From assembly GCA_963924565.1 (NCBI GenBank), contig OZ004608.1, positions 30,442,001 to 30,506,000 of the forward strand: DNA of 64,000 nucleotides, in the 5' to 3' direction. The DNA comes from Ascidiella aspersa. Lineage: Eukaryota. The notes beneath the pieces are model-generated. The model saw nothing but the letters and a program-made list of their open reading frames with translations. It did not search any database and was not told the origin of the DNA. Shown here in pieces: positions 17,804 to 46,506 of the stretch; within the stretch, counting starts at the first letter, position 1; the number at the start of each line of letters is the position of its first letter. Made by a program: the position numbers and the translations under genes.

Positions 17804-20800
17804 TTACTTCATCTCTGGCATACCGGCCACCATTGCCCCTTCGATTCCACACTCGTTGTGACCGCGCCTGATCTTGAAGAAGCCCTTGGCACCCCAGTCG
17901 CTGTTCCAGCTGTTGGCCACCAGCCAGTAAGGGGTGTTGTCTTCAGTGCCCCACCCGATGATCTTGACGGCATGCCCGCCCAGCTCACCACCAGTTACGT
18001 GCTGGTAGACGCCTGGAGAATTTAGGAATTTTTTAGGTGCGCCGCGGGACATTGACTTGGATGGGCAATTTACGTTATATAACTGACAAGGAGCTTGATA
18101 AAAATGAAAAAGCCCAAAAAGCGTTTGCGATACGTTTTTGTATCATCAGTTAGTGTTATATTATTCATTTTGGCTTTCAGATTCATTATCAATCTACATT
18201 ACAGATCCGTGCATAGTGTGACTAAATAACTGATAATACTGCGGTATTTATTTAACCATGGCGTTGCCGCGTGGTAAGGGTATTTGTCAAATTATTATTT
18301 TTTTTTTAATTTTAATAAAAGTGTTCCGCTTTATATTTCTTTTTTCACTTGTATGAACGAATCTTTTCTGAAGGATTTTGAAGTCCACAGTCATTCGGCA
18401 AAAGTTAGTAAGTTAAAAAAAATTCCGGCCAAAATTCGACCCGCAAATTTTCGAAGAACCGGCCAAATTCAGTAAAGGCCAAATTAATGACACCCGCTAA
18501 CAAACAAAAACTTTTTTTAAGTGACACAATCCCCATTTACCGGATCTGTAAGTCGGGAAGTCGGCGTAAACGGTGAAAGAGGCTTCGACCGGCCCGTGGT
18601 TCATGATCTCCATCTGGATCTGGGCAACGTCTTCGGGCAGCTCGTACGAGTGCTTGCCTTTGTGCACGTCCTTGGCGAAGTTCATGGTCGTGTTGCCGGT
18701 GCACTTGTCCTTGCACTTTGGCGTCTCACCACCCTCGCTGCATTTTGGGCGAGTGCCTGAATAAACAGGTGCACGTAACAATATTATGTTTGTGATCTTT
18801 AGTGTTGTGAACAAGTCATTCTGAAATGACTCGAGTCTCAGTCAAGTCATAAGTCTCAAACTCCTTAGGAATAAACCAAGACACTTCTTTGTCATTAAAA
18901 TTTGTTAACTCTTCCGATTGTGAGAAATATTAAAACTAAAAAATAACACAAAACGCAACTTATAGAAAGCTTATTGTTTTACATCCACACATTGAGATAA
19001 ATAGTTCAATTTTACAAAAATATGCCTAATAAAAACACTTCATTTAAACCGAAGTTATTTGTCAAAAAGACCTTAATTAAGTTAAGTAAAGTCATTTGTC
19101 CTAAAGACTTAAGTCAAGTCATTTGAAAATAGTGACTTAAGTGCATTGACTTAAGTCATTACAACACTGGTAATCCTAGTCCGGGGCTTAACTGAGGGTC
19201 TCCACCATACAGGAGTTCGCTTGTAGGCACATAAAAATTTCCCGCAAAGTTTGAAAAGACTTTCAGATGTCCATTTATACATGTACTTTTTAACATTTGG
19301 TTTGTAAAAATCAAAAACTAAAATAACACAATTCCATGGTACGCGGGGCGTTGTTTAAAGAAATGTGTCTGGAAGCAGACATCGCAAAAGGTTCTAAAAA
19401 TTTGGGAAATGTTTTAAAAAATTAAGAAAGGTTTTAAAAATTGGAGAAACCCCCGAGTATGTTTGAAAGCGTAATGGCCAACAATAACGGTAGACATATA
19501 ATAACGAAACCGATATCTTTATTATTTGAAAGCTACTGGAACGAAATTACATCTCAGATTTTTATGAAAAACGTTTTGCGAAAAAAATTGTGTTACTCTC
19601 CTGTATGAAACTCATTTTAATTGTAAGCGATATGTTACCGTTGTAAGCATACAAGGACATGGCCTACGCTAAAAAAGTGAATTATAAAGGTGTTTGGATG
19701 GTAAAGCCCAAACTAATTAAGTGAGCTGGCATTTTTGCTTGATAGACACTTTTCCGTTTTGCAAGTGTTGCAAACTCAGAAGACCTTACAAAGCTGCCAG
19801 ACATTTTCGTTGTACTTGCTTAGAATGTAACAAGAACCTACCAAAATAGCATTTTCGTGCTTTGAAAACACGTCGCGATGGCCAAGTGTTTGAAACGCAA
19901 GAAGTAGAAAATCACAGGGAAATGAAAACTGACCATGCAAAAGGAACTAGCTAGAAACTGATGTGGCCTACGTATGTGGTAATTTCTCGTTCCAAATAGG
20001 CTGGAGGCTACAAACCTTTTTGTCTCATGGTAAAACGAAAAACGTGTGTACTTGCGTGACGTTTATTGGCGACCATGTAATAAGTTACCCCCAAACACAT
20101 GATTATTTAAAAGGACCATAAAAGAATTGTTGAATTGGATTTTTAGAAGACATATTGCTTTTACCATTTGAAATTATGTCACCATAAGAATACATTTTTC
20201 TCTATGTTTTGGTACCGCATATTAGGTTACATATTAATATGTGTATATTATGGCGGAGTATCAACTTAGGTTTAAGATATAGAGCAGTGTAAGGCTCTGT
20301 TGCTTGAAGCTTTGTTTTTGGAAGTGGACTAACACGGAATCTTAACACGACGCCAAATCCGCCACGATAATGACGTTTAAGAATCAGGAAACGCACAATA
20401 ATTGGCCCACACAAGTTCTGTGACTGCAAACAAAGCTAAGCAAAGTGTTGTATTTGCGTGTGCCTAATAACCGCACCACGTTTTTACAGTTTTATATTGC
20501 AAAACAAATAAAACGCCTTGCAGGGTGGGTGGAATAGAAAAGCAACATCATCAAAAAACACGGCAGTTTTGGAACAATGCCAGCATGCAGGTGACTATTA
20601 AGGATTAATGGGTTTCGGCAATCGGTCTTGTGACTTAATTTCCTGGAAGTTTTTTTTCCTTATTAAATGCGTTTTTACGATTGGCATCTCTATACACCAA
20701 TACCATTTAAATGCAATAAACTGGGAAGAACAAAAGCAGGATACACACATATTTTCCTAGGTTTATCCGCCAATACAAAGGCACCTATTATGCAGACAAA

Positions 20801-23147
20801 ACTAGTGTTTAACGTCATGTGATGCTAAGTGTTTGTTCAGCTTCAATTGGTACCAGTTGGTGCCATCCTTAGCAAGTGTCTGCAACAATGTGTGCAATGT
20901 TGTACCCTATTGCTAAGTGCTCAATGCAACAAATGCCAACTCTTGTTGTTTTTGTTAAGAGAATGAATAATAAATGGGTCAACGCTTTCCACAACGTTAT
21001 GAAGCTAATGTATTGCAGCTAATTTGCAAGTAGTAAAACATCACAGATAACAATTAGTTGCTTCAACTTCCACAAAAGGCAACCAGGCATAAAATCATTG
21101 TTCCAACTGCATTGTGTTTACTTCCTGCTTATCACTGTAGCTGTTATTTAAAAACAGTATTAGATTGTCTGCCACTCATGTTACGCCAATAAACCTGCTG
21201 AGAGACTCTATGATGTCCGTCTTATTAAACCAGGAAATATTTTTGAATTCTATACAGTAGTGCAATTAAAAGGTACCTTCAACATGGTGTTCACAAGGCG
21301 CAATCGAGTATGGCTGACAGTACTCTGTGTCCTTGTACAAGAAACCAGTTACCAGGCCAGTCTTCAACCAGTACTGCCATGCAGCAGCTGGAAAACCACC
21401 GTTACATCTTAAAAAAAAGATAAATGTTGAGGGTACTTTTTGGATTATGAAACAAAACAAGCTTAGCTTCTTTATAATTCCAACATATCTAGGAGTAAAC
21501 ACATCTAAGATGTAAAACAGCCAATATACTACAAATAACTGCAGGAGGCCAATTAAAAAACAAACATTGGCCTTAATTTGCAGCAAATTACATATAACAG
21601 TCAGGGCCTCAAACCAAAAAATAAAAATGTAGAAGCACAATAGTTATCAGAACAAGTTTTACTACGGCAAAACAACAAAATTAAAAAATGTTTTACCCAT
21701 CTCCACATTCTCTACAGCAGCTAGTCAGATCTTCGGCAGAGATTTCTGTGATAACTGAACCGTTGCTGGCAATGCAAATCCGATCAGAGATGGCTTCAAC
21801 AGCACCAAAGGCCCAGCAAGATCCACATGAGCCCTTCAGGTAAGTTTTGTTTACTAATAGCCAGGCTTCCAGTTTTATTAAGATATATATTATACCAATT
21901 AGGTTTTATTAAAGAAAATATATCTCATAGAAGTGTAACTCTTTAGGATTTTTACTCGCTTTTATTATCTACCTCTCATAATCCACTTTTACCAGAATGA
22001 AATTTACAGTTTATAATACAGTTAATAACAGATGAAATGGCTAAAAAATAACTTGAAAGATATGATGCATACAATTTGAATTGTTTACCTGGTCTCGGAT
22101 GGCCTTAATTGACGGACAATTTGGCCATTTAGTCCTTGAGTCAAATGTCTCTGGTACCTTGCTGGCATCAATTTTGCGGAACCTTGTTGCAACAATTAAA
22201 AAGCATTAAAAGTGTAGAATGTTTTTTGAACTATAAACTATTATAAAGCTATAAGTAAACTTCCGAAGTATGTGGAAAGTATATATGTATGGCTAACAGA
22301 TAATCTTTATTGGCTAAAAAAGTACAAAATATAAGGAAATTTTCAAGGTTTTCAATATTTTATATTTAGCTGTAGTATGCCTTAATTGTTCTTGAAATAC
22401 ACTTATTTCTTTATAATAAAACATACAAATAGCTGTGTATCTAATTAAATAAAACTGTTATATATAATAAATAAAAAAGGATTGCTCAATCCTACATAAG
22501 AGGGAGCCTAGCTTGAGGGTCATCATTCTTCTTCACACCGCACAAGTGTTTCAGAGATTGTGGTGTGTAGTATTCTGGATCGAAGTTGTGGGTTGCCTGA
22601 GAGGGAGCAAAATTAAAATGCTGAATACAGGTATAACCAATTTGTATATTTTGGAAGCATTTTTCTTACTCTACTAAAACAAAGCTTTGTGGTAAATCAT
22701 GAGATTATACATATATACTTGAAATATATGAGTTACATTTCTCCTTTATCACTGGTTAATTGTGTATGAGACTTTATCAGGATTTGGGTGGTGTCAAATT
22801 AGTGTTTTAAAATCATAGGACCCCACTGCATTTCATAACTTATGGTGGCCAAGAAAAAAACAAAATATGAGTAAAAATTTATTATCCACATTGCTCTGTC
22901 CAATTACTAACTAAGATTTCAAACAAATTGCTTCTCAGTTAAGCAATTCCCACATTTCAGACTATTGATGAAAGTTGGTTGAAGAAATAACCAATAGCTT
23001 AACAAACAAGAAATTAGTTACCTTCCAAGTTGTTTTCATAGAATTCACGGTTTCAACAATATCATAGAAGTTCTCTTCTTTTTCAAAGACGACGAGGCCT
23101 CGGACTGCACAAAACAGGCAAAACGCAAGGGCAATGCTAACACGCAT
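17804..23147 (-). CDS. CTSB: Cathepsin B, canonical active copy (337 aa, 7 coding exons)
   Basis: Exons 23147-23022, 22596-22496, 22182-22089, 21833-21697, 21407-21277, 18756-18541 and 18012-17804, all GT-AG (1014 nt). Contains signal peptide, propeptide, [13 protein letters not shown] (Gln, Cys), occluding loop PCEHH, GGHAV (His) and ANSW (Asn). Confidence 0.96.
18800..19169. mobile_element. GACTT-rich hAT MITE family copy in CTSB intron 5
   Basis: Ends are TAGTGTTGTGAAC...TTACAACACTG, with degenerate TSD GTGATCTT/GTAATCCT and AAGTC-rich internal repeats. Confidence 0.8.
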
Positions 23148-24858
23148 TGTGACAACGAAAATGTTTAAAACAAACTAAAATAACTGGTTTCTTCATAGAA
23201 AAACAACACAATTCGAATTAGCTTGTTATAATTTATTAACGGTAAACCAAATGACTATTGCACTGCACAGCGAGGCACAACGCACATACACAGACAAGCG
23301 GAACATAGGCTATGTTAGTGAAGTGTTTCGTAACTACATTTCTTTGTTTACTGCAAGCCTTTTTCTTTAAAAACACGCCATGCATGACTAAGCAGAGTCG
23401 CAGACCTTAACAACAAATGACTTTTGTTCTATGATTTTTCACCACTGTTTTTTCTCAAAGGGTAGTTGATACAAACTAGATTGTAAACGCGCATATTCAT
23501 TACCGAGCAACAGCTGTCGTTACATATCATGCGCCTCTATTTCACTTACGGTACTACTTGCTATTATTTTATGACATTGTTTGTGCTCAACAGACTTTTT
23601 ATCCAAAACAAAAATTTGCCGCTGATTTTCATCATCGTTTTTCAAAGTTTTATTGCAAATAAATTCGAAATTTGTATTTACAATAACACAGAAAGACACA
23701 ATAAAAAACGTATCACTTCAACAAAAGCAGCGAATTCGACTTAAGATTTTTTAATGTTATGATTGTTTGCAAGTTATATCGGTAAATAATATTATCTGTT
23801 TTCGTATCTATTTTATTTTAGTCAATTAGTATATTAAATGATTAAGCATTTTTAACGCTGTTAATCCTATTGTCGAAAAAAGCCTAAATAGTTGTACATT
23901 TGAACAGTGAGCAATGACCAGCAGAATTATCTTACTCCAATTAAAACTGAACAAACTGTCACAGCATTTCAGAGTGCATTGTCAGACTGCGAATTGTAAA
24001 TATGCAAGAACGATTTTTAACAGAAATTTCCTCTACACCCGCGTAACAAACACGTTACAATTACAAAGAGAGATGCTCGCTCGCTATACATAGTAAATAC
24101 AATTATGGCATTTTAAGATTTCAATGCAGTACATGAGAACTGATCTAACACATCACATATCGAAAATTAATCATAACACTGCAACTAGGGATTTCCAATT
24201 AAATAAATTCTTTTTGTCCATTTTCCTCCCCAGTTTATCCCTGGAACAAATTTTCTCCCGTAATTAAAAAAATGATCCCTAAGGAGGCCATGTGGCTCCC
24301 TTTGAGAATCACTGGTCCAGCCAGCACAATTATTGCCTGTTTTTGATAAGACACAGCCGAAGGCACTTCACTGCGCCGCAAACCTGCCATGCGGGCGGGA
24401 ATTACTCGGCCAATAAAGGATTTTATAGCAAACAAGTCTAGCCTAGAAAAGCATAGCATGTCATGTCGTTGTAAGTAAAACCTCGCCTTAACGGGCCCGT
24501 CTCTTTACCAACTGAACTATACGCGGGATCAGGCGGGAGAGCAAGTCGAGGAAGAAGCAGAGCAATTTTGCCTGTTACATCCCGAACAACTTAAAATCCA
24601 ACGACGGTGCATATCAAGTCATCGACGCATTCATGCACAGGTGTTTACAGTTGCCATTCATCCATTTTGTAGAACAAAGAAGACAGCAGTGTTTTTTAAG
24701 GTGAAACGGTCCCCCAAATTTCTCCAGTGGTTTCCCAAATTTTGGACTTGCAACTTTTTGCTATTGAAATGAAACACTTGCGGTATCTTAAAACTACTTA
24801 GCGGTCACCCAAACCAAACCTTAAAAAAAAACCTGAAAGACAGTGTAACAAAGTTTAT

Positions 24859-26239
24859 CCGAAGTCGCATTTCCATCCGCAGCAGGTAAGGATATCCTGT
24901 GCCGACATCTCGGTGACAATCCTGGCCTGGCTGAAGATGCACTGCCGATCGGACATGACTTGCGCCGCCGCGATCGCCCGACTAGCACTGCATGCTACCC
25001 TGTATTACACACAGAGATCGGTGATGCCAATTTAAGTCAATTGCCTATATAGTCCGGCGCAAAACAGTGGTGTTCTGTCCATTGGCGATACACGAATTGA
25101 TAAGCACTGGCATGCTCTTCGTTTTTTTAGATTAAATTGTAGCTCTTCTGTATTGAAATGCGTTGTAGGGCCTATAAAATGAGACAAAATACGAGATACT
25201 ATATACGGCGTAATATCGATAGTTTCTTTGGATACAAGTTGCATTTTGAAGCCCATTAGAAGGCATTTCAAGGATAGTTGGCGAGATGTCACAGACATGC
25301 TTAATTTGAAAGATATACGTTTAAAAATAGCATTTTCACAATAGATAAGTAGGTAGTGTAAAACTTCAATGCATTAATGGTACACTTCCACTACAGCAAT
25401 AGCAAAAACAAACACATTTGTAAAGTGAGGGCCTATGACCACTGTTGACAAGCCCCTACATAAACGTAATTCTGATATTAGCCACTAGTAAATTTTAGTG
25501 TCTAAAGCCTATACCTGATCCATTGTAACACCGATCGAAGGACAATACGGCCAGTGGCCACGGGCATCGAATGCGGTGGGGATTACCCCATGTAGAGATT
25601 CCCTTTCGTTATATCTACACAGATGGGTCAAAGTTCACTCTAGCCTGAAACAACATGACAAAGCACTTTCTGGTAAATGAATTCCGATAAATCGATCCAT
25701 TTATAACTAACTATTGTTTACATAAAGCAGGGGTGTCCAACTTAAACATGCTGACGTGCCAATTTTTATCTTATAACTTCTTCCCGTGCCAAAGTTTAGC
25801 AACTATTTTTTTTCTAATTTTTAAAGGGCTTTTATGCAAAAAATGAAAACAGTATAGTGTTATCAGAAGTAATTGTCTGTGTCGCAATTGTTTTGTATTG
25901 TGAATAAACAATGACAATATGCTGTATAACAAATTTAGCTTTTTTGACAAATGGCTGTATTTTTGGGGGGCTTGCGTGCCATGCTGGACACCCCTGACCT
26001 AAAAGGGTCTCCTATAAACAGAGAGCCGTATAGGCCAAAAGTGTCGTTGGTTTAAAATTGAAATTCTATTTACAAAATGTAACACAAGTATTACCCACAC
26101 TAACCTGCCGAGAGAATTGCCTCGTATTGACGAATTCTATTAATGCATACCAGTCTGACGAGTTACCGATTCTGGATGTCAAGCCTTTATTAAACAACAC
26201 AAGCTCGAGAAAGACTAAGTAGAAAATATTTAACAGCAT
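24859..26239 (-). pseudogene. Truncated cathepsin B-like pseudogene (copy D); exons 1, 3 and 4 recognisable
   Basis: Exon 1 is 26239-26105 (MLLNIFYLVF...LIEFVNTRQFSRQ). Exon 3 is 25614-25515 (IPTAFDARGHWPYCPSIGVTMDQ). Exon 4 is 24999-24859 with a +1 frameshift, CSASRAI in place of CGSCWAF, and a donor mutated GT->AT. Exons 5-7 were not found. Confidence 0.85.
25728..25996. mobile_element. hAT MITE inside cathepsin pseudogene D
   Basis: Ends are CAGGGGTGTCCAAC/GCTGGACACCCCTG, with degenerate TSD ACATAAAG/ACCTAAAA. Confidence 0.8.
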
Positions 26240-26650: not shown

Positions 26651-29600
26651 TTAATTTAGAAACTCTACAAGTACAGTTCGACCCCAGCCGATGACCTTGA
26701 CCGCGTGACCCCCGACCTCGTTCCCGGTCACGTGATGATAAACACCTGGAAATAAAAACTTTTGAGAGTTAACAGGATCCCGCATTTTGCGACGCCGGTT
26801 GATGTCGCTGTACGATCTATTTCCAGAGTTGCAAACGACTCATATTAAAATATTTGAAGTCCCAGTCAGTTTATTTGTAAAATAACTTAAGTCAAGCCAA
26901 GTCCTTGTCATAACAGTAAACTTTAAAGAACTAAACTTTTAAAGAACCTTAAAGAACTAAAAATTGGTAAACCACAAGTCTGATTACGAGCAATAACTCA
27001 CAGAGAAACTAAATTTAATCAAAACAATATGCTTAATGAAAACATCACATTATTACCGAAGTCAGTTGTCCAAAGACTTAAGTCACATTAAGTCATTTTT
27101 CTGAAACGACTTAAGTCAAGTCAAGTCATTTAAAAACAGTGACTTAAGTAAAGTCACTGACTAACGTTATTAAAACATCGACTATTATCGCTTTCATATG
27201 TCTTTACCAAGGTAACAAATTTAACATCCAGACGCCGTATAACTTTGATTTTTAGCGACATGTGATTTACGTTGAGTTAGACTGGTGGTTCTTAACTCTT
27301 TAGTGACGTTACATTTGAGAACAACTTTAGTGGAAAAAGGTGATTTAAGATCCTGAGAAAGTTTAGTCGTACGGACTGCGCGTCCGTTTCTATTTCGACA
27401 AATGTTTTAAAAGTTTTTTTTAAGCTTAACTTGCTTCTTTTCTTAATATTTTTACCTCCTTTATACGCGAAGAAGTCCGAGTGGACGGTGAACGTGGCTT
27501 CCACCGGGCCGTTCTTGAAGATTTCCATCTGGATGTTGGCCACCCGACTGTCCACCTCGTACGCGTCCAGCGCAAAGTATTTGTCGCTCTTGTAATCAAT
27601 CGACTTATTTCCAAGACACGATCGCGAGCACTCGGGCGTGACGCTTGTGGAGGTCCGATTGCAATCGTGTTTCTTACCTGCTGAAAGGTCGGACTATAGC
27701 AGGGATTCTTAACCAGAGGAACCCCTTGGTGATACGAAGCACCACAACAGGGGGTACGACATAAAGTGTGAAGTTATGCGCTATTTAGGCATATTTGTGA
27801 AGAATGCACATTTTACTAAAAGATACAACAAAAAAGACAATAGTAAATTGACTGTTTGTTTGCGTGTTGTCAATTTTGTTGAATTTACAAAACTGTTTAA
27901 TGCATGCATTCTACTCGTAAGTTATAAATACACTGAGTTTGCTTCCTAATGTTACAATTTTATTTACTTCCTTCGGGCATTGTAGGCAGGGGTACGAGAA
28001 AATTTCATGAAAGCTCAAAGGGTAAAGGGTACGAGCGCTAAAACGGTTAAGAAACACTGGACTATAATATTTGTGCCGGATACAGCATAAATAATGTTCC
28101 ATATACAGAGTGTGGTGGTTGCCCTGGCCTATATAAGCAGATAAGTCACACTTTGTAAATGCTATGACCTGGATAAATTGTATTGGTAAATTACTTGACT
28201 TAAACTCAAGTGAGTATATTTCAGCGTTTTTAAATTTTAAGTAAACAAATTATTTTTGTAAATTACCTGACTTGGACTCAAGTGCGTATTTATAAATGAC
28301 ATTAGTGAATAAATTATTTTGGTAAATTAGGTATTCGTTTTAGACTTAAGTGTGTATTCATTTCTATTTTTAAATAACCTCGGTGAACTAATAAATTTGG
28401 AAAATTACGTGATTTTTTAACATGAGTAAATAGATTTTCTTAAGATGATTAGTTGAATTTACTTATACTCGATTAAAAAAATTAAAATTATGAAAATTGG
28501 CCAAATTTTGTTAAGTGTAATTTGGAAAGCATGCATTAGAAATAATTTGACTCGATAACCGATTTTGGTAACCATTTTGCTATATTGATGCATTGGTAGC
28601 CTAAGTTAGTTGGTTTTCATTTTGCAAAAAGTATATGTATACTGGCTTAAGGGTTATAAACTTTTAAATTGCATTGCGAACCATATGAAAGGAAAATAAT
28701 GATGATGCCTTTGTAATTTAACATAAAAGATTGCGGTGGGATTTGATGTCAGGTCTGCACCTCTCTTCAGCTTGTGGTGTTCACAAACTTTGTAGAATGG
28801 AGAATAGCAGGTTAAAATTCAGATTGGAGGCCTTTGGAGTCAATGTGAAAAATCTAGCTCACCATTGCTGGCATGGTGACACGGCGAAATGGAATACGGT
28901 TGGCAGTATTTATGGCGTCCGTAACCCTGTCCGGTTACAATTCCGTTGTACTGAAATGGAGTCTAAATACAGTCAGTGCAAACCGTTTGCTTTCTTTGAA
29001 AAAATGATTATTTTTTAAATATACACTAATATTCATGGACCCCAGTTTAAGGACCCCTAATCTATATGCTTTCAATACCAACCTACCGCTAATCGGTTTG
29101 GGAGCTTAATGCATCTGTTCCGTAAAACTCTACAATCTGAATAGACAACGCACCCAAATCCACACTCTTCGCCGCAACAGGACAGAAGATCTTGGGCGGA
29201 CAGCTGCGTTGTGATTCTTCCCTCGCTGAAAATGCACAGACGGTCGGTCATCGCTTGCACGGCGCTGATCGCCCAACTTGAGGAGCACCAGCCCTGATAG
29301 GTAAAGTTGACAGACAATTCATCAAAATTGACTGGGCTGGATTATAGGATAAAACTCGCCTTGGATCCAATTTGTACAGCAAATAGTACTGAAGCCAACG
29401 AATGACCTTGATATATTTTCAGAGAATGACACTGAATGTAGCTGACAAACCGAAATAATAACAGCTATAGAGTTTCCACTTTAGGTTATTTAAAATTTCT
29501 ACTTTTATTTAAATTTGCTTTAGTCGTTTTCAAACATATCAATATTTGCTTTTTCGAGTGCCATGCACTACAGCTTTTTTTAATTTGGTAAATGATCGCC

Positions 29601-30526
29601 CATCTGCGTCAATATAGCATCGATAAGGTTTGTTAAATTTTAAATAAAATTAATTGATCAACCAGCCCACCAGGATTTAGTTTACGGTTTACATTTATTT
29701 CTCATATGTTGCTTTTTAAAACGTACAAAAATATTGATGTCGATCTTTTCGAGTAAACTTTAGTAAATTTGAATATGACTTACCTGATCTTGAATTGAAA
29801 CGAGCGATGGGCAGTTGATCCAGTGTTCTCTTCCGTCGAAAAGCAACGGCATGCCTTTCAAGTTATTATGCAACCTGCATTCCGTAAACTAAAAAGTTCA
29901 AGTTTGACAAAACAAGTTAAAACAATGAACTGATTTAGTTTTAGTAAAGTGGCTGTAGTATTGTTAAAATAAGACGATTAAAATCATTGAAGCAAACAGT
30001 TAGGTTGTATTAAACTGTTATAGAGCATATATATCTGACTATTTTGACTTTTTTATGTAGCCTACAAAACAATTTTCCAGTTGTTAAACAATTTTGAATG
30101 TAAAGTGTACCGTGTTGCTGAAAAACATTTTGCTTTAATTTTTCATTTATTTTATTAGGCTGAATAACAGTTAGCTTACATTTTAGGCGCACGCTGTACT
30201 TTTGACTTGTTTGCCCCACAGAGTTTTTTCAAGTCGTGGGGTCTGTACAGGTCTGGATCAAAGTTGTGTCCCGCCTAAAATCAAAAGTTAAATTTAAACA
30301 TTGCTGGTTAGCATATAACTTCCTTCGTACAACTTTTTGCTGCTTGACAATCTTGCCATAAGGCTTTTAAAACATACGAAAGATGTGTTATCTGTGTACT
30401 TACCGTCCACGTTGTGTTGAGACTGTTAACATACTCCACGATATCATGGAAGTTTTCTTGTGATATAGTTGATGCACTCGACTTTAAAACTCCAACAGCA
30501 ATGAGCAAAGGCAAACAAATGAACGT
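26651..30526 (-). pseudogene. Cathepsin B-like pseudogene (copy B) with Cys->Ser nucleophile
   Basis: Exons 30526-30404 (ACG where the ATG is expected), 30274-30180, 29874-29784, 29293-29154 (QGWCSSSWAISA), ~28953-28863 (the 5' CxGGxPxxAW part is missing), 27677-27456 and 26745-26651. Homology stops after GGHAVKVIGWG and there is no ANSW. Confidence 0.88.
27700..28059. mobile_element. hAT MITE inserted about 20 nt from the exon 6 acceptor of pseudogene B
   Basis: TIRs CAGGGATTCTTAACC/GGTTAAGAAACACTG, with TSD GACTATAG/GACTATAA. Confidence 0.88.
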
Positions 30527-31303
30527 CGGAACTTTTGCCGAACTGCTCTTGTATAGTTTTAAAACAGCGTTTTTGGCCAGCCTTACCCCGATAACACAGC
30601 AACGTTTACAGTCAGGGGAGTGTCTACACTTTGATTGTACCTCAAAAAACAACTAGTCGAATGAAGGCTACATCATTATTGCTCCAGGCTACTCAGTCCA
30701 CTGATGCAACACTTTAAGTGGAAATTTGACGTACCTTTTAACACTGACATGTGAAAACCTTTAGCAGTTGGCGCTTCACAGGTCTTACCAAAAATTAAAA
30801 AACAACTTTTAGAAGCAGTATAGCCTATAGTTTATATGTCTAACTGAGCACTTGTTTCGCCGTAGTCCTTACATTTAGCTGTTTTCTTCCAGCTTGTAAA
30901 TCTAATTACCCTTTTTGGAACAGTTCAGCAACATGTTTAACCGGATGAAGCAAAGTTGAGCGAAAACCTTGTCATTATTTTAACACAATTTTTTGTGAAA
31001 GAGTGTCGCCTGATTCCCTATTTTTTGGTAATATCGGTTGCATTATTGTGTAAACTAGTGCGACGTTAATCTCTGATATAAAAGGAACTTACAAATTCGT
31101 TCGTCTGTGGCACACAAAGTGGAAATTGAACAAAACAAAAGCACAAAACTGCAAAACGTGTAAGCTCGTAACAAAGTTTTATTGGCATCAGATGAAATAT
31201 TAAAACAATTTTGCATCAAAAATACGATTGCATTGTGTTATACATTGCACACCACGAAGATGGAAGTGTAAAAAGAAAACTAGAAACAACTTTATCACTC
31301 AGA

Positions 31304-34300
31304 TTAAAGGATGCTATTCTCCACGATTTCACCAAGAGGCGTCTTCTTTCGTTTCTCCTCCTCCCAACTGCGTTTCATTAAATCATCGTCGATCCTTGGT
31401 CTTCCGGCAATCACAGAGGACTCGATGCCACACTCATTCACCTCCCGGAGAATCTTAAAGAATCCCTTCTCCCCCCAGTCGCTGTTCCAGGAGTTGGCCA
31501 CCGTCCAGTAGCGGATGTTCTGTTCTTCTCCCCAGCCGACGATCCGGACCGAGTGGATGCCGAGAAATTTTCCAGCAACGTGCTGGTACACTCCTGAAAA
31601 ATAAAACTGTTTAAGACCCGACAACTGTATAGCCTACATCTCAATAATGCGAGCAGTGACGATTTTAGGTTTGAAGTCACGCTGACAAACACTCCAAAAC
31701 TAGAAGATCATCTTGTATTCGCTATTCGGTTTATAAGTTTTCAGTTTTCGGTGTCTACAACATTTATTCGTCGACTTGTTCTTCTGTATTTACAATATAA
31801 GCTTTTCTTTATTTTTTAACTAGGCGTAATAACTAATCTACAGCATTTGATCTTTTTTCTTTGGCTGCTTTTTCTTGAAGACAATTCTCGAAATATAATT
31901 TCCGATTCTTACCAATGTCCCCGGGTCCGTTTTGAACTGACTTTACCCGATGAAACATTACAATGCCGTTGCCATTACCGATTTACTGTACTTCATGAAT
32001 ATATCGTAACGGCAATAACAAGCAACAACGAACAAACTAAAAGTTAACCATTCGTTGAAGACGCCCATTGAGGCACATATACTCCAATCTTTGACCGGCG
32101 CGATTTAAATCTCGACCTCCAGATGGTATAATGGCCTATGGAATAACTTCTTTAAATCTGATTTCATAGTGATATCAATTGAAAGGTGTCTGATACGCCT
32201 ATAAACAGTTTTTTTGAAAAAAAGTAGGAATAAACAACTCACAGAAGTAGCCTACATGAGGGGTAAAACTTCCCGAAACTAGAACACCAGGTTGTATTAG
32301 GTATATTGAAATCAGTAAGACACCAAGGATTCCTAAAAAGCCAGGAAGTAAGACATTTTTTTAATTGCTTACCGACTTTGTAGGTTAGAAAATCGGCGTA
32401 GACCTTCATGGTGGCTTGCACCGGACCGTTGATGAACATCTCCATCTGGATTTGGGCCACGTCGCTGCTTACTTTGTACGTGTCAACGCCGAAGTACTTG
32501 TCCTGCTCGTACACCAAAGACTTGTTTCCCTGGCAGGTTCCGCTGCACTGCGGAGTTTCGTTGGTTTCGTTGCAAAGCGGCCTGGGCCCTACACGGAAAT
32601 CAATGTGTAATATATGACTTACTTTTGAAGTCCAATACAAATTTATTGATTTTCGGCTAATCCGGTTGGTGAGAGAATCTTTAAATATAGTTGACATGAC
32701 AAATTTTAGCTGCATTCTAAATTAAACAAGCGTTAGGTTTTAAAAATTATAATCGCGGTTAGTGTTTTCCTAAAGGTGTATTGGAATTATTTATTTATTT
32801 CAATTGGATAAAAAAGTGCCAAATGACATAAAATCATTAATCGTACATATTACATTTTTAGACAGCCCAATTTAAAATTATTTTTGTTTAGAATTTAAGG
32901 TATTTTCTTTTTAATGTTATTTGATGGTCACCAAACACAATTTGGACTGTTTGACTAAATAACCAAATAATGGCAAATTAATTTATTAACTTGACTTATG
33001 TCCACTTGATTAACTGCTTTGAAATAACTTAGGTCTTTTTGGTAAAATTAATTGACTTAAGTCTTTTGACCAAATAAATTGGGTTAAATTAAGTGTTTTT
33101 TTCCTTTTTTGTGATTTGAATTAGACTGGGACTTGACTTGGACTTAAGGTATTTAAAAATGAGTTGTTTACAATGCTGGAATTTTATCGCAAAACCACTG
33201 AGATAAAAGCGCCAAGCTGGATAAAATATAGGTATAGACTACCTGAGCCGTTATGACTGCAGGGTGGAAACGCGTAGGGCTGACAGTATTTCTTGTCATT
33301 GTAGCTAGATCCGCTCACAATGCCGGTCCACTGCCAATAGTTCCACGCTGCAAGCGGGTAACCACCTCGACATCTAAATGTATTAAATAAAACAATAAAT
33401 ATTTTAAATTTTTGTAGAGAAACTTTTTTCAGTGGAAGATAAATCCCCTATTTTTGCGTTATTTTAACCCCTATTTTTGCGTTATTTTAGTGTACATCGT
33501 GTCAAATAACGCTGATTTTAAGAAATTAAGCGAAAGAGATGACTTAAAAACAAGGGTCATTGAAAGACAGATATAACAATGGGTTTAAACTTTGTTACCT
33601 TTATTATTATTAAACTATAAAGACGATTTTTTTCACAAAATATGGGGTAAATCGTGAAAATATAATCGTTTTGTAAAACACGTTCTTAAAATTTAGTCTA
33701 CATTTCCATCCCAAAAACACGTCGCTCATTAAACTACCATTAACAGTTTTTAATTCAATAAGAGAATATGTCGCTCGGGGTCCGTATAGTTGATTGAACC
33801 CTGCAAGGGTAGTAAAAGGCTTATATACATATTTTATTTTCATGAGTAAAAAAATGCACGAAACAACAAATGTGAAAATTTTTTAACACAAACTTTTTTT
33901 CTGCAAGCTCCTACCCTTGACCGCATCTCCATCCGCAACAAGATAGCAGGTCTTCGGCGGAGAGCTGGGTGACGACCCGGCCTTGACTGAAAATGCAGAT
34001 CCGGTCACTCATTGTGTGCGCTGCGCCCACGGCCCAGTCCGAGCCACAGGAACCCTTCAATAGAAGATATTTTGGACCTAAGGCTTCAACTGCAATATGT
34101 TTTTTACTCTAAAAGGCATAGGATCGATATTAATAGGTTTTTGCCTAAAACAATGTTTTGTATACATTGTATAGAAATTTTCGTTCACGATTAACTGGAC
34201 AAGACTTCTTTAACAGCGCACATGCATCGCATGCACTATAGCTTTCGTTTTTACCATTGACGGTTTTAAATGCATTGTATGCATCACTGCACAGATGTTA

Positions 34301-35648
34301 TTCGTATGGTTTAACAAATTAATCGATTTAAAATCACAGGTGGTAAAACTACTTCGTTCAGATATATAACCAGACCGATACTTTATATCTTATTCGGATA
34401 GCGATGTTTGACATTGCGGGAAGAGATTATGGCGTTCTAATCTTATAACAAATGACGTCATTACTGTGATCAAACAGGCACAATTAATTAAGTTCGACCG
34501 TGAAAAGGAATGTTGCCAGGCTAAAATTTATTTTAGATGGAAGACGCTAAGTTGCATTTACATGGCGTTTTGCTATTTTTCGATCAAAGAGTGCCGCGTT
34601 GTATTGCAAACTATCGACTGAAATGCCCTTTTTTGGTATTGGACAGAACCGATATTACCCTATAGTAACGGACAAGTACTTGACATCGGGTATCCCGTAC
34701 AATATACGATACTATCAGACATACCTTCTATGTGGGCTCGGTTTTACTACTCAAGCTAGCTGGCTGTTAAAAAATGGATCGAAGATACCATAATAGTTAT
34801 CTTGTTTCAGTAAAACCACTTCGTTAAAGTCTTACCTGGTCGCTCACTTGTTTGATTGTCGGGCAAAACGGCCAATGCCCACCCGATTGAAAGAGAAACG
34901 GGATTTTGATCTTGAACTGGCGGTATCTAAGCACAAATGCATTTCCTTAAATTGTTGTCTAACAAGTTGGAGAAGAAATATATCATTCTCTTTTCTTACA
35001 TCGTCGGTATTATTTCTTCATTGTTTGGATTATTCTTTTGAAGCGTCCCGCATAGATACGATAGATCATCAGGGACGTACTGCTCCGGATTAAAGTTATG
35101 GCCTGCCTTCAGATAATAAAAAAACGTTAATTACGTTCCTTTACTTTATCTCCTATAAATTGATATGCAGAGTATATGCCTTTATTGCTTCTTAGATAAA
35201 AAAATGAAAAATTGATTGTACGAACTTATACAATCACAACTAAACATTACGAAAAGTCTCATACTAAAACGGAAGCTGTTGTTTTTCTTTAAAACTAACA
35301 AAACAACCCTAATCGTGACACGTTTTGCATGAAGCAGACTTTTAGCAACTTGTAGGGCTGTAAGCCAGGCATTGCTGACCTGCCGAATCGCATTTTTTTA
35401 TTTTTCATGACTTTGCTGTGTGATGTCACATCCGCATAAGCACAATCAACCCCTAAGTTAATCCATTTACTTGGTCAGTGCCTGAAATTATCCGCGGCGT
35501 TCAAAATGATCAAACTTCGAACAAAGCTTACCTTCCATGTAGTATTGACGCCGTTCACGTCGTTGATTAATTCCTGAAAGGCGTTGATACTTCCTGCTGA
35601 TATCTGACTGGCGACGCATATAAAAACAATAAATCCGATCAACCACAT
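31304..35648 (-). CDS. Intact cathepsin B-like protein (copy C, 363 aa) with catalytic Cys replaced by Asp; probable pseudopeptidase
   Basis: Exons 35648-35532, 35106-35000, 34926-34836, 34054-33915, 33373-33243, 32588-32373 and 31593-31304, all GT-AG and in frame (1092 nt). Motifs are [12 protein letters not shown] (GAC at 34039-34037), occluding loop PCSHN, GIHSV and ANSW, plus a C-terminal extension. Confidence 0.9.
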
Positions 35649-37094
35649 TGTGCAATTTCGTAACAGTCCTAAGCAACCCACTAGCGTTTCGTTATGTCAA
35701 CTGACTTTCCATTGAATGGAAACGTTTATAATAGTTCCTCGCCTTTTGTAAGATCAAAGCACAGTGAAAGTTTATCGAATAGGTTTTAAACCAAAACCAA
35801 AGCCACCCATCAACAATCAATCAATGCTCTTTCATTATCACGCCCCGGGGCAGGCTGCGAACGACTGGTTTTGGACTGTCATTTGTGTACATTAACCGCA
35901 AACGAACGGTTTTACAGCAAAACACGTGCTACATTTATCTGATTTAAGTTAGCAAAAATAGTAATTTAAATATGGACGTTATACTATCGGTGTTAAGGAA
36001 AATATTGGCAAAAAATGGCAGAAGCAGCGATTAAATTGGCAAAATATCTATGAAGTAATGCTATGTTGTCTGTGGGTAAAAATATTGAGGCCTAAAACCT
36101 ACAGATATTTATTTCTGATTACTGTCTGTTCTTTTTTCTTAAAATCAGTATGCCCTACTATATAATCAACTATTGACTGATAATATTGAATCGCAAAGAG
36201 TAGGAGAAGGCTTTGCAATTCACTATCAAGCTAAATTGCAGATCCGTGTATAGTGTACCCAACTGTAAACTGCCTAATCGAAAAGCTTTGGTTTTGTTCG
36301 ATTTTGCGCACTGTCGCCAGAATAGTCTGTCAAAACTACAGATATGAAACACGCTTACATTGCTGCACGATTGAAAGTCCAAAACAACAGTTTTTTCCGC
36401 CGCAGCTTCCGATTATGTGACAAACGCAGGCGTATGACTTAGCCCAGTCTAGGGTATGCTGTGATTAGCACGCCCACGTCGCCCAGTCAACGCAATGTTG
36501 GGTCTCATATCAAGTGACGCATTTCACCCCATGTTTACCGACACGTGTCGATTTTTGCTGGCAACGTACAGAACAAAATATTACATGCAAATGCGCATTT
36601 GCAATTACAAGTTCATAACATTGGACAGCGTTGTAACGACTTGTCAATGACTTGACTTAACTGTACTTAAACCACTGTTTATAAATGACTCCACTTGAAT
36701 TAAGTCGTTTTTTTGTAAACTGACTTGACTGACATACTCTGGACAAACGACTTGACTTGGACCTAGCTGATAAATAAAAATTTTAATTGAATTTATTCAT
36801 CATTTGATTATAAACAAGGTGTATTTTCAAGTTTTTTTACGTCAAATGATTACATTGTAACATGTTAGTTTTTTGTCATGTTTAAGTTGAATATTATTGC
36901 TCGTTAAAATCGGACGAGTTTACTTGTTTTAAAAGACTTGACTTGGTTATCACTTTGCATTGGGTTCCGAATCGGATATCGCTAGAAAACATGGCCACAA
37001 CCGATTTTGGGTGTATAACACATGTTCGTGCAAGAATAGCGCACGAGTCGCGGGTATTTCAAATGTTTTTTATTCCTTGGACACATATACAAAC

Positions 37095-46000: not shown

Positions 46001-46506
46001 CAGTGTTGTAATGACTTAAGTCAATGACTTGACTTAAGTGCACTTAAGTCACTGTTTTCAAACGACTTGACTTGACTTAAGTCATTTGGGAAAAATGACT
46101 TGACTTGACTTAAGTCTTTCGGATAAATGACTTGACTTGACTTGACTTAAGTCATTTGGACAAATGACTTGGGTTAAAATGAAGCGTTTTTTTTTCAAGT
46201 ATTTTTTTATAAAATTGAGCTATTTATCCAAATTTTAGCACATAAAACAAATTGCTTGCTATATGTTGCGTTTTTTCTTATTTTTTAGTTCAGTTATTGC
46301 TCATAATCATACAAATTTAAAAATTTTAATAGTTTAAAATTTTATTTTTTAACAAGAACATGACATGAAGTTGACTTGCTCTAATTATGACTTGACTGGG
46401 ACTTGACTTGTTACGTATTCAAAAAGACTTGACTTGGACTTAAGTTGTTTTACAAATGACTTGACTGGGACTTAAGTCAATTTAAAATGACTTGTTTACA
46501 ACACTG
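46001..46506. mobile_element. Best-preserved copy of the GACTT-rich hAT MITE family
   Basis: TIRs CAGTGTTGTAA/TTACAACACTG, a perfect TSD TCGATCAA and tandem GACTT(AAGTC) units. Related degenerate copies lie near 2385-2700, 5500-5640, 9379, 18800, 26830-27180, 32940-33180, 36627-36950, 37660-38070 and 63005-63080. Confidence 0.93.

Follow-up and report, generated by a model that had tools for sequence, protein, structure and literature searches.

We analysed a stretch of 64,000 nucleotides from the genome of the tunicate Ascidiella aspersa (contig OZ004608.1 of assembly GCA_963924565.1, positions 30,442,001 to 30,506,000), referred to here as the window, and identified within it four cathepsin B-like copies on the same strand by tblastn of seven exon peptides. 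These were designated A to D, and coordinates are those of the window. Copy A is an intact seven-exon gene in which the catalytic cysteine of cathepsin B, Cys29 of the mature enzyme, is replaced by aspartate encoded by GAC, two base changes from a TGY cysteine codon. With Asp as residue 29, copy A cannot, on the evidence of its sequence, act as a cysteine peptidase. We hold it moderately probable that copy A is a secreted or lysosomal, non-catalytic paralogue of cathepsin B, comparable to TrCB1.6 of the schistosome Trichobilharzia regenti.

Copy A extends along the minus strand from 35648 to 31304, and its seven exons are free of stop codons in their reading frames and encode 363 amino acids (39 + 35 + 30 + 46 + 43 + 71 + 95 whole codons plus four split codons), with all six introns bounded by GT and AG. 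The GC content at third codon positions (GC3) of the exons is 0.43-0.76, against a GC content of 0.28-0.36 in the introns. A signal peptide of 18 residues, followed by GS, was recognised by eye. The spliced model was compared exon by exon throughout, in translation as well as in the profile, structure and homologue comparisons. The parts of the gene, with residues numbered as in mature cathepsin B, are as follows.

35725..35730, minus strand: TATAAA motif, about 80 bases 5′ of the copy A ATG, found by eye
35532..35648, minus strand: exon 1, 39 codons, with the ATG at 35648, the signal peptide and the start of the propeptide
35000..35106, minus strand: exon 2, propeptide (AGHNF...), phase 2 at its end
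34836..34926, minus strand: exon 3, last part of the propeptide followed by mature residues 1-23, with Asp22 and Gln23 (CAG 34838-34836) kept and Arg21 replaced by Ser
33915..34054, minus strand: exon 4, residues 24-69 and a split codon, containing the nucleophile position
34037..34039, minus strand: codon GAC, Asp at the catalytic Cys29 site, inside GSCGSDW
33243..33373, minus strand: exon 5, residues 71-113, with the start of the occluding loop at Cys108, Ser109, His110 (CAT 33255-33253) and Asn111 (AAC 33252-33250)
32373..32588, minus strand: exon 6, residues 115-185, with Arg116 and Cys119, the latter followed by two NET sequons, and with Gln for Glu171
31304..31593, minus strand: exon 7, residues 187-254, with Ile198, His199 (CAC 31555-31553), Ser200, Asn219 (AAC 31495-31493) and Asp224, followed by an extension and the stop codon TAA (31306-31304)
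31307..31387, minus strand: charged C-terminal extension, 27 residues past residue 254
31178..31183, minus strand: AATAAA motif, about 125 bases 3′ of the copy A stop codon, found by eye

Searches of Pfam exon by exon placed Peptidase_C1 (PF00112) on exons 4 to 7 of copy A with E-values of 1.2e-7, 0.0026, 0.0015 and 6.6e-19, the matched profile positions being collinear along the gene (21-60 in exon 4 at 32.5 bits, 66-92 in exon 5 at 18.3, 98-152 in exon 6 at 19.1 and 166-218 in exon 7 at 69.3, for a cut-off of 20.7). Adjoining segments of Propeptide_C1 (PF08127) were matched by exon 1 (profile positions 3-17, 16.2 bits) and exon 2 (positions 18-39, 15.3 bits), each of which taken alone lies below the cut-off of 32.7. 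The top solved-structure matches of all copy A exons compared were cathepsin B or procathepsin B, in ungapped alignments pairing residues 9-30 of exon 3 with residues 2-23 of the mature enzyme, 1-45 of exon 4 with 24-68, 1-41 of exon 5 with 71-111, 2-70 of exon 6 with 116-184 and 1-68 of exon 7 with 187-254. The alignment offsets match the lengths of the copy A exons exactly, and there is therefore no net insertion or deletion relative to the mammalian enzyme over residues 2-254.

The residues that partner the catalytic cysteine are all in place in copy A, Gln23 as residue 30 of exon 3 and His199 and Asn219 as residues 13 and 33 of exon 7, and Asp22, His110, Arg116, Trp221 and Asp224 are also kept. 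Besides residue 29, changes were found at Arg21 (to Ser), Glu36 (to His), Glu109 (to Ser), His111 (to Asn), Glu171 (to Gln), Gly198 (to Ile) and Ala200 (to Ser), the last two turning GGHA into GIHS. Thirteen of the 14 conserved cysteine columns are retained, the nucleophile being the sole loss. The occluding loop has its canonical length, its disulfide cysteines Cys108 and Cys119, and His110 and Arg116 together with Asp22 and Asp224, their salt-bridge partners in the closed loop, and is changed only at Glu109 and His111. Most of what had been proposed in an earlier, sequence-only reading of this locus is upheld by these results, namely seven clean exons encoding 363 amino acids, a GAC nucleophile codon at 34039-34037, here aligned to residue 29, retention of the oxyanion Gln, the His and the Asn, retention of the structural cysteines, the substitutions of HH by HN and of GGHA by GIHS, and a protein of secreted or lysosomal type, to which a secretory-type N terminus (by eye) and a cathepsin B propeptide correspond. 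Its description of the occluding loop as altered was right about residue 111, to which Glu109 is to be added, and overstated for the loop as a whole. The Asp-His pair might conceivably, as it proposed, bind substrates, cystatins or metal.

Where the occluding loop ends, immediately behind Cys119, an N-glycosylation sequon is found in copy A (NET-NET, 32575-32558) and in copy B (NRT, approximately 27660-27650), there being none in copy D; a glycan at this place would lie over the primed side of the cleft. The C-terminal extension of copy A is present neither in copy D nor in any fragment found and gave no family match.

The aspartate codon is borne out by sequencing reads. A 9062-base contig from run X1, of depth 65 and perhaps the very source of the assembly, agrees with every letter of the window between 31100 and 35900. 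Raw reads of the DNA run X7 show fixed differences from the window at 34027, 34364, 34374, 34495 and 34798 and so come from another individual or haplotype; their mean depth is about 6 in the bin of the nucleophile codon, and no alternative letter is listed at 34037-34039. A further 48 differences lie beyond those itemised, and the polymorphism counts are to that extent incomplete. The sole coding difference listed is nonsynonymous, a C to T change at 34027 in 4 of 4 X7 reads which replaces Gly33 by Ser four residues past Asp29, in a column occupied by Gly, Ala or Ser in canonical enzymes. Just before exon 5, in a run of T at 33376, a one-base deletion was seen in 4 of 6 X7 reads. Contigs of X3, labelled as another organism, differ from the window at 0-1 positions; they are from the same species and carry no cross-species information.

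RNA was sampled from a single run, X8, of which approximately 6 % (7.8 million records) was covered. About 230 bases of X8 reads fall on exons 6 and 7 of copy A, all in the orientation that a stranded library would give for a gene on the minus strand. Within intron 3 (34481-34802, depths 2.93 and 0.92) lie a few X8 reads of the opposite orientation, for which a repeat origin, antisense transcription or unspliced transcripts could account.

The other three members of the array are as follows.

26651..30526, minus strand: copy B, pseudogene, with AGT (Ser) at the nucleophile position (29278-29276)
24855..26239, minus strand: copy C, pseudogene fragment with ATG at 26239, AGT (Ser) at the nucleophile position (24983-24981) and the next Trp replaced by Arg
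17804..23147, minus strand: copy D, intact canonical cathepsin B, with GSCGSCW (TGC 21818-21816), CEHH, GGHA and ANSW

Copy D has seven exons with intron phases as in copy A. Copy B has ACG (30526-30524) at the place of the start codon, with no in-frame ATG back to a TAG at 30655; the first 14 or so residues of its exon 5 (residues 71-84) are lost with a clash of frames, and its exon 7 ends nine codons past GWG (TAA 26653-26651), the Asn219 region being gone. In copy C there is a TAG in exon 2 (25617-25615) and a stop right after exon 4 (24857-24855), and exons 5-7 are absent. Judged by their coding sequences, the array consists of one active gene (D), one intact cysteine-less gene (A) and two dead cysteine-less genes (B and C). 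All four exon 4-like matches in the 308.6-megabase assembly lie in the window, none having been found outside it.

Divergence between the copies is large at synonymous sites. Copies A and D differ at a proportion of 0.71 of synonymous sites (pS) and 0.34 of non-synonymous sites (pN) over 329 codons, with omega at approximately 0.2; for copies A and B the values are 0.79 and 0.32 (229 codons), and pS between B and D is 0.79. In exons 3-4 all six pairs of copies show pS of 0.78-0.90 and pN of 0.29-0.34, and non-synonymous differences across the copies amount to 0.29-0.36. As synonymous sites are saturated and non-synonymous divergence is moderate, the duplications are old and the copies have been constrained for most of the time since. 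In a neutral simulation of a 363-codon frame with intron base composition (4000 replicates per step, conservatively run with no insertions or deletions), the probability that the frame survived fell from 0.30 at 0.02 substitutions per site to 0.056 at 0.05 and to 0.003 at 0.1, and at 0.2 or more none of the 4000 replicates kept it. It follows from this rate of frame loss that copy A can have been neutral at most during a brief final stretch of its history, and copy A has been under purifying selection for nearly all of it.

Synonymous saturation bars branch-wise ratios of non-synonymous to synonymous substitution rates, and relative-rate and conserved-column counts were used instead, with nine full-length outgroups aligned exon by exon and conserved columns defined as those identical in at least seven of eight canonical outgroups. 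Tajima counts of changes unique to copy A against those unique to copy D were 36:18, 31:17, 34:20, 34:16, 39:20, 25:23, 37:14, 29:17 and 32:19 over the nine outgroups, so that copy A evolved only about twice as fast as copy D, with 25:23 as the weakest case; changes unique to A and to B stand at approximately 1:1 (about 20:20). Near-invariant columns are kept at 81 of 96 in copy A, 93 of 96 in copy D, 63 of 73 in copy B and 21 of 31 in copy C. Copies A and B are both changed at the invariant Arg21, Cys29, Glu36, Gly92, His111 and Ser185, mostly to different residues. Of 73 columns, 13 are changed in A and 10 in B, these six being common to both, far above chance expectation (Fisher p 0.0014), and Arg21, Cys29 and Glu36 are changed in A, B and C alike. 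Derived states common among A, B and C number 7-10, as against 2-3 with D. On the simplest reading of these patterns, the constraint on catalysis-linked positions was probably lifted once, in the common ancestor of A, B and C, and the cysteine-less proteins would then have been kept by selection long enough to saturate synonymous sites.

The synonymous difference between copies A and D is 0.61-0.63 in exons 6-7, compared with 0.77-0.80 in exons 1-5. Copy D itself is of two-part composition, GC3 rising from 0.38-0.49 over exons 1-5 to 0.76-0.80 over exons 6-7, on the far side of a repeat-rich intron of 2.5 kilobases. The lower difference in exons 6-7 could be due to old gene conversion between members of the array or to a common GC3 bias.

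The nearest full-length proteins in the database, by name including insect and nematomorph enzymes, show about 50 % identity to copy A and about 57 % to copy D, and no database match was nearer to copy A than its own array neighbours. When exon 7 was compared with fragment-sized proteins, 13 of 13 candidates had 57-72 % identity and none reached the C-terminal extension. These low identities fit a fast-evolving lineage that is sparsely represented in the database. Of the representatives that best match exon 4, the top 150 show at the nucleophile column Cys in 125 alignments, Ser in ten proteins, Asp in nine and Arg, Gly, Tyr and Pro in one each, with 23 alignments not covering it; the share of Asp is inflated because the copy A query itself has Asp, which favours Asp-types by a few bits.

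The nine Asp-bearing proteins (P0001, P0029, P0033, P0035/P0151, P0087, P0110, P0112, P0117 and P0126) include a Schistosoma bovis 'cathepsin B' (P0001, RTG85447.1), the hydrozoan-like P0151, a GC-rich protist-like group and several fragments, and are largely unrelated to one another as well as to copy A. Identity to these Asp-types is 38-60 % for copy A and 37-57 % for copy D; as A is no closer to them than D is, Asp arose independently. An ancient clade of Asp-types is ruled out by this comparison and by the 120 nearest relatives of P0151, of which 119 have Cys. P0151 itself, at 78 % identity to a cathepsin B-like protein of Clytia hemisphaerica, keeps Gln, His and Asn as copy A does. Further likenesses to copy A beyond the shared Asp are the loss of Glu36 in eight of the nine Asp-types (it is kept in 85 Cys-type alignments, and P0126 has His there like A) and the replacement of Gly198 in all four Asp-types covering that residue; His199 is lost in three of the four that cover its region (P0001, P0029 and P0033). 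A Trp following Cys62-Cys63-Gly64, common to copy A and four Asp-types, was given no weight, as it represents only two independent events and five Cys-types have it too.

The sequence-only reading had also taken the gene to be selected, in agreement with its intactness and with purifying selection over nearly all of its history as seen in the saturated pS, the frame-survival simulation and the column counts, and the codon it gave is the one found in the X1 contig and the X7 reads, where no TGY occurs. Its statement that Asp is unusual compared with Ser stands in so far as Asp is rare, although it is not unique, nine Asp proteins being set against ten Ser proteins among the best 150 with an Asp-biased query. 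It had missed that the neighbouring copies B and C are dead genes.

TrCB1.5 and TrCB1.6 are inactive cathepsin B1 paralogues of T. regenti, and the report on them (PMC7054455) describes TrCB1.6 as carrying Cys29Gly and His110Asn, as highly expressed and as forming complexes with chicken cystatin. Copy A resembles both in its stand-alone procathepsin B architecture, with Cys29 replaced, the fold-defining cysteines kept and one loop His changed to Asn. According to the same source each is a paralogue beside active isoforms, as A is beside D, and binding of cystatins or substrates is the role proposed. The two systems differ at the nucleophile site, which is Gly29 in TrCB1.6 (one base change) and Asp29 in copy A (two). 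TrCB1.6 is reported to be changed at His110 and Asp224, which loosens the loop, whereas copy A keeps His110, Arg116, Asp22 and Asp224 and is changed at His111. TrCB1.6 is moreover approximately 98-99 % like the group of its active sisters and strongly expressed, whereas copy A diverged anciently and shows only trace RNA, and the host of TrCB1.6 is parasitic whereas that of copy A is a free-living tunicate.

Stand-alone cathepsin B homologues lacking the catalytic Cys also occur in insects, among them Periplaneta americana XP_069692896.1 (Ser), Tenebrio molitor XP_068915047.1 (Ser) and Lycorma delicatula XP_075215313.1 (Tyr); an 'inactive cathepsin B homolog' of the Tenebrio gut is mentioned in PMC4336737. 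With copy A they have in common procathepsin B length, the lost nucleophile, a G-x-H-S motif (GHHS or GLHS, GIHS in A) and a loop of the form CDHN or CEHN (CSHN in A). They differ from it in having Ser or Tyr and not Asp, and at about 48 % identity their ancestry is no closer to copy A than that of canonical enzymes. TINAG and TINAGL1 (tubulointerstitial nephritis antigen and antigen-like 1) are secreted proteins whose cathepsin B-like domain lacks the catalytic Cys and which act by binding (bioRxiv 10.1101/2020.06.05.136747), and a multidomain cathepsin B-like protein of a tick goes with the TINAG type (PMC10665701); an Acipenser TINAG-like protein, P0057, is among the database relatives named. 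The TINAG type has N-terminal somatomedin B and other domains and Ser as nucleophile residue, whereas in copy A nothing but a signal peptide and a cathepsin B propeptide precedes the domain and the nucleophile residue is Asp; its exons 1-3 gave Propeptide_C1 or no family, and its length is that of procathepsin B. Inactive cathepsin B paralogues and TINAG-type proteins are thus well documented in the literature searched, of which coverage was partial, but it yielded no description of a cathepsin B homologue with Cys changed to Asp, nor any mention of an inactive cathepsin B of ascidians. The phrase 'replaced by aspartic' in PMC2625449 was considered as a precedent and set aside, as it concerns another motif.

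Taken as a non-catalytic paralogue, copy A would go back to an ancient tandem duplication of copy D, the one canonical cathepsin B in the genome. Copies A, B and C would form one cysteine-less group of which A is the only intact member, catalysis having probably been lost in their common ancestor. From its residues copy A appears to retain a complete papain fold with most of the cleft for substrates, and it may bind instead of cutting, with peptide substrates or cystatin-type inhibitors held in the cleft. It might thereby modulate the active enzyme D encoded next door, a role which in the T. regenti report is proposed and partly shown for TrCB1.6. The carboxylate of Asp29 may pair with the imidazolium of His199, mimicking the thiolate-imidazolium pair and keeping the charge pattern of the cleft. 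Removal of the propeptide in copy A would need another protease.

Several observations weigh against this reading. At codon level (GAC, AGT, AGT and TGC in A to D) one ancestral loss of the cysteine and two separate losses take four steps each. Both of the other cysteine-less copies are dead, which may mean that the group is falling out of use in A. aspersa. The single coding difference seen between two individuals, Gly33 to Ser, alters the protein. Within the X8 sample no intron-spanning read was found at copy A and RNA was at trace level only. No orthologue of copy A was found when exon 4 was compared with 1.84 billion representatives (maximum 71 % identity), in a single-exon search that can miss full-length kin. 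Ile198, Ser200, Thr173 and Ser245 of copy A are presumably residues of the S2 pocket and may narrow or reshape it, and ordinary substrate binding may thus not be assured.

Because its two cysteine-less neighbours are dead, it has to be asked whether copy A is itself a relic, a gene that served for long, either as an enzyme that lost its Cys late or as a pseudoenzyme, and that has recently been freed from selection, is barely transcribed and is not yet broken. We regard this as unlikely, while giving it appreciable weight. Copies B and C are broken, and yet their remaining exons are open and as conserved as those of A, from which it follows that gene death in the group is recent and ongoing; the equal counts of A- and B-unique changes and the conserved columns kept by B are in keeping with this. 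The trace of RNA without spliced reads in the one run sampled and the non-synonymous nature of the only coding variant seen point the same way, and in the simulation a frame can still be free of stops after up to approximately 0.02-0.05 neutral substitutions per site. What speaks against such a relic is the absence of any defect in 363 codons, 12 splice dinucleotides, start and stop, the retention of all but one of the cysteine columns, and the presence of TATAAA and AATAAA at distances that, by eye, are fitting; the RNA evidence, moreover, comes from a small part of one run of unspecified tissue. An error of assembly or sequencing at the Asp codon, which would make copy A an ordinary second cathepsin B, is of practically negligible likelihood, as the X1 contig is identical, the X7 reads from another individual offer no other letter at the codon, and fourteen further conserved positions are also changed in copy A; we found no point in its support.

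That copy A is still an enzyme appears improbable. In that case a carboxylate centre would be formed by Asp29 together with His199 and Asn219, Gln23 supplying the oxyanion hole, and would act as general base or through an acyl-aspartate in the hydrolysis or transfer of a peptide (at acid pH), an ester or another substrate. Asp and His serve as nucleophile and base in other hydrolase folds, those of the haloalkane dehalogenases and epoxide hydrolases. Around the Asp of copy A, Gln23, His199, Asn219, Trp221 and the cleft are kept; the hydrozoan-like P0151 has the full set of Gln, Asp, His and Asn; and the recurrence of Asp, two base changes from TGY, in nine of the 150 best relatives from unrelated lineages hints at selection for a carboxylate. 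That count is, however, inflated by the Asp-bearing query. In P0001, P0029 and P0033, three of the four covering the region, His199 is lost and the Asp does not form part of a dyad, and the Gly198 beside the His is replaced by a bulky residue in copy A and in all four covering Asp-types, a change also seen in Ser-types that are plainly dead. The literature searched, again with partial coverage, contained no account of such a variant being active. A similarly slight chance attaches to the proposal that Asp is a selected state, either as a working carboxylate-histidine centre (an Asp nucleophile or base of a hydrolase or ligase) or as a charge mimic that tightly traps substrates or inhibitors. 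As part of this proposal, the two-step change from Cys to Asp would have occurred independently in at least six cathepsin B lineages, including the tunicate, a hydrozoan, a schistosome and a protist-like group.

A short interspersed repeat of high copy number, with the palindrome GACTTAAGTC at its core, was observed in the window at 33032-33192 and 34320-34480 (introns of copy A), 27075-27117, 19106-19157, 2387 and 46013-46478, and is present in introns of copies A, B and D; the motif has 11 matches in the window against 0.06 expected. In the bins of this repeat the X7 DNA depth is approximately 100 times that of the flanks, with many rearranged joints, and RNA reads pile up there too. Two long open reading frames elsewhere in the window gave no Pfam family.

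Parasites, insects and the TINAG family supply most of the dead cathepsin B paralogues known so far, and copy A would add to them a relative from a free-living chordate. Should copy A be silent and neutral, it would be an ordinary decaying duplicate. As a pseudoenzyme it would be an unusually clean case, with every fold-defining residue kept, an alignment to the mammalian enzyme that is free of net insertions and deletions, and a long period of purifying selection, and with a carboxylate at the nucleophile site in place of the usual Ser or Gly. It raises the question of whether an Asp-His pair in a papain fold only keeps the charge of the cleft for binding or does chemistry. The array as a whole, with an active gene, an intact putative pseudoenzyme and two freshly dead copies, would constitute a compact natural series on the retention and loss of pseudoenzymes.

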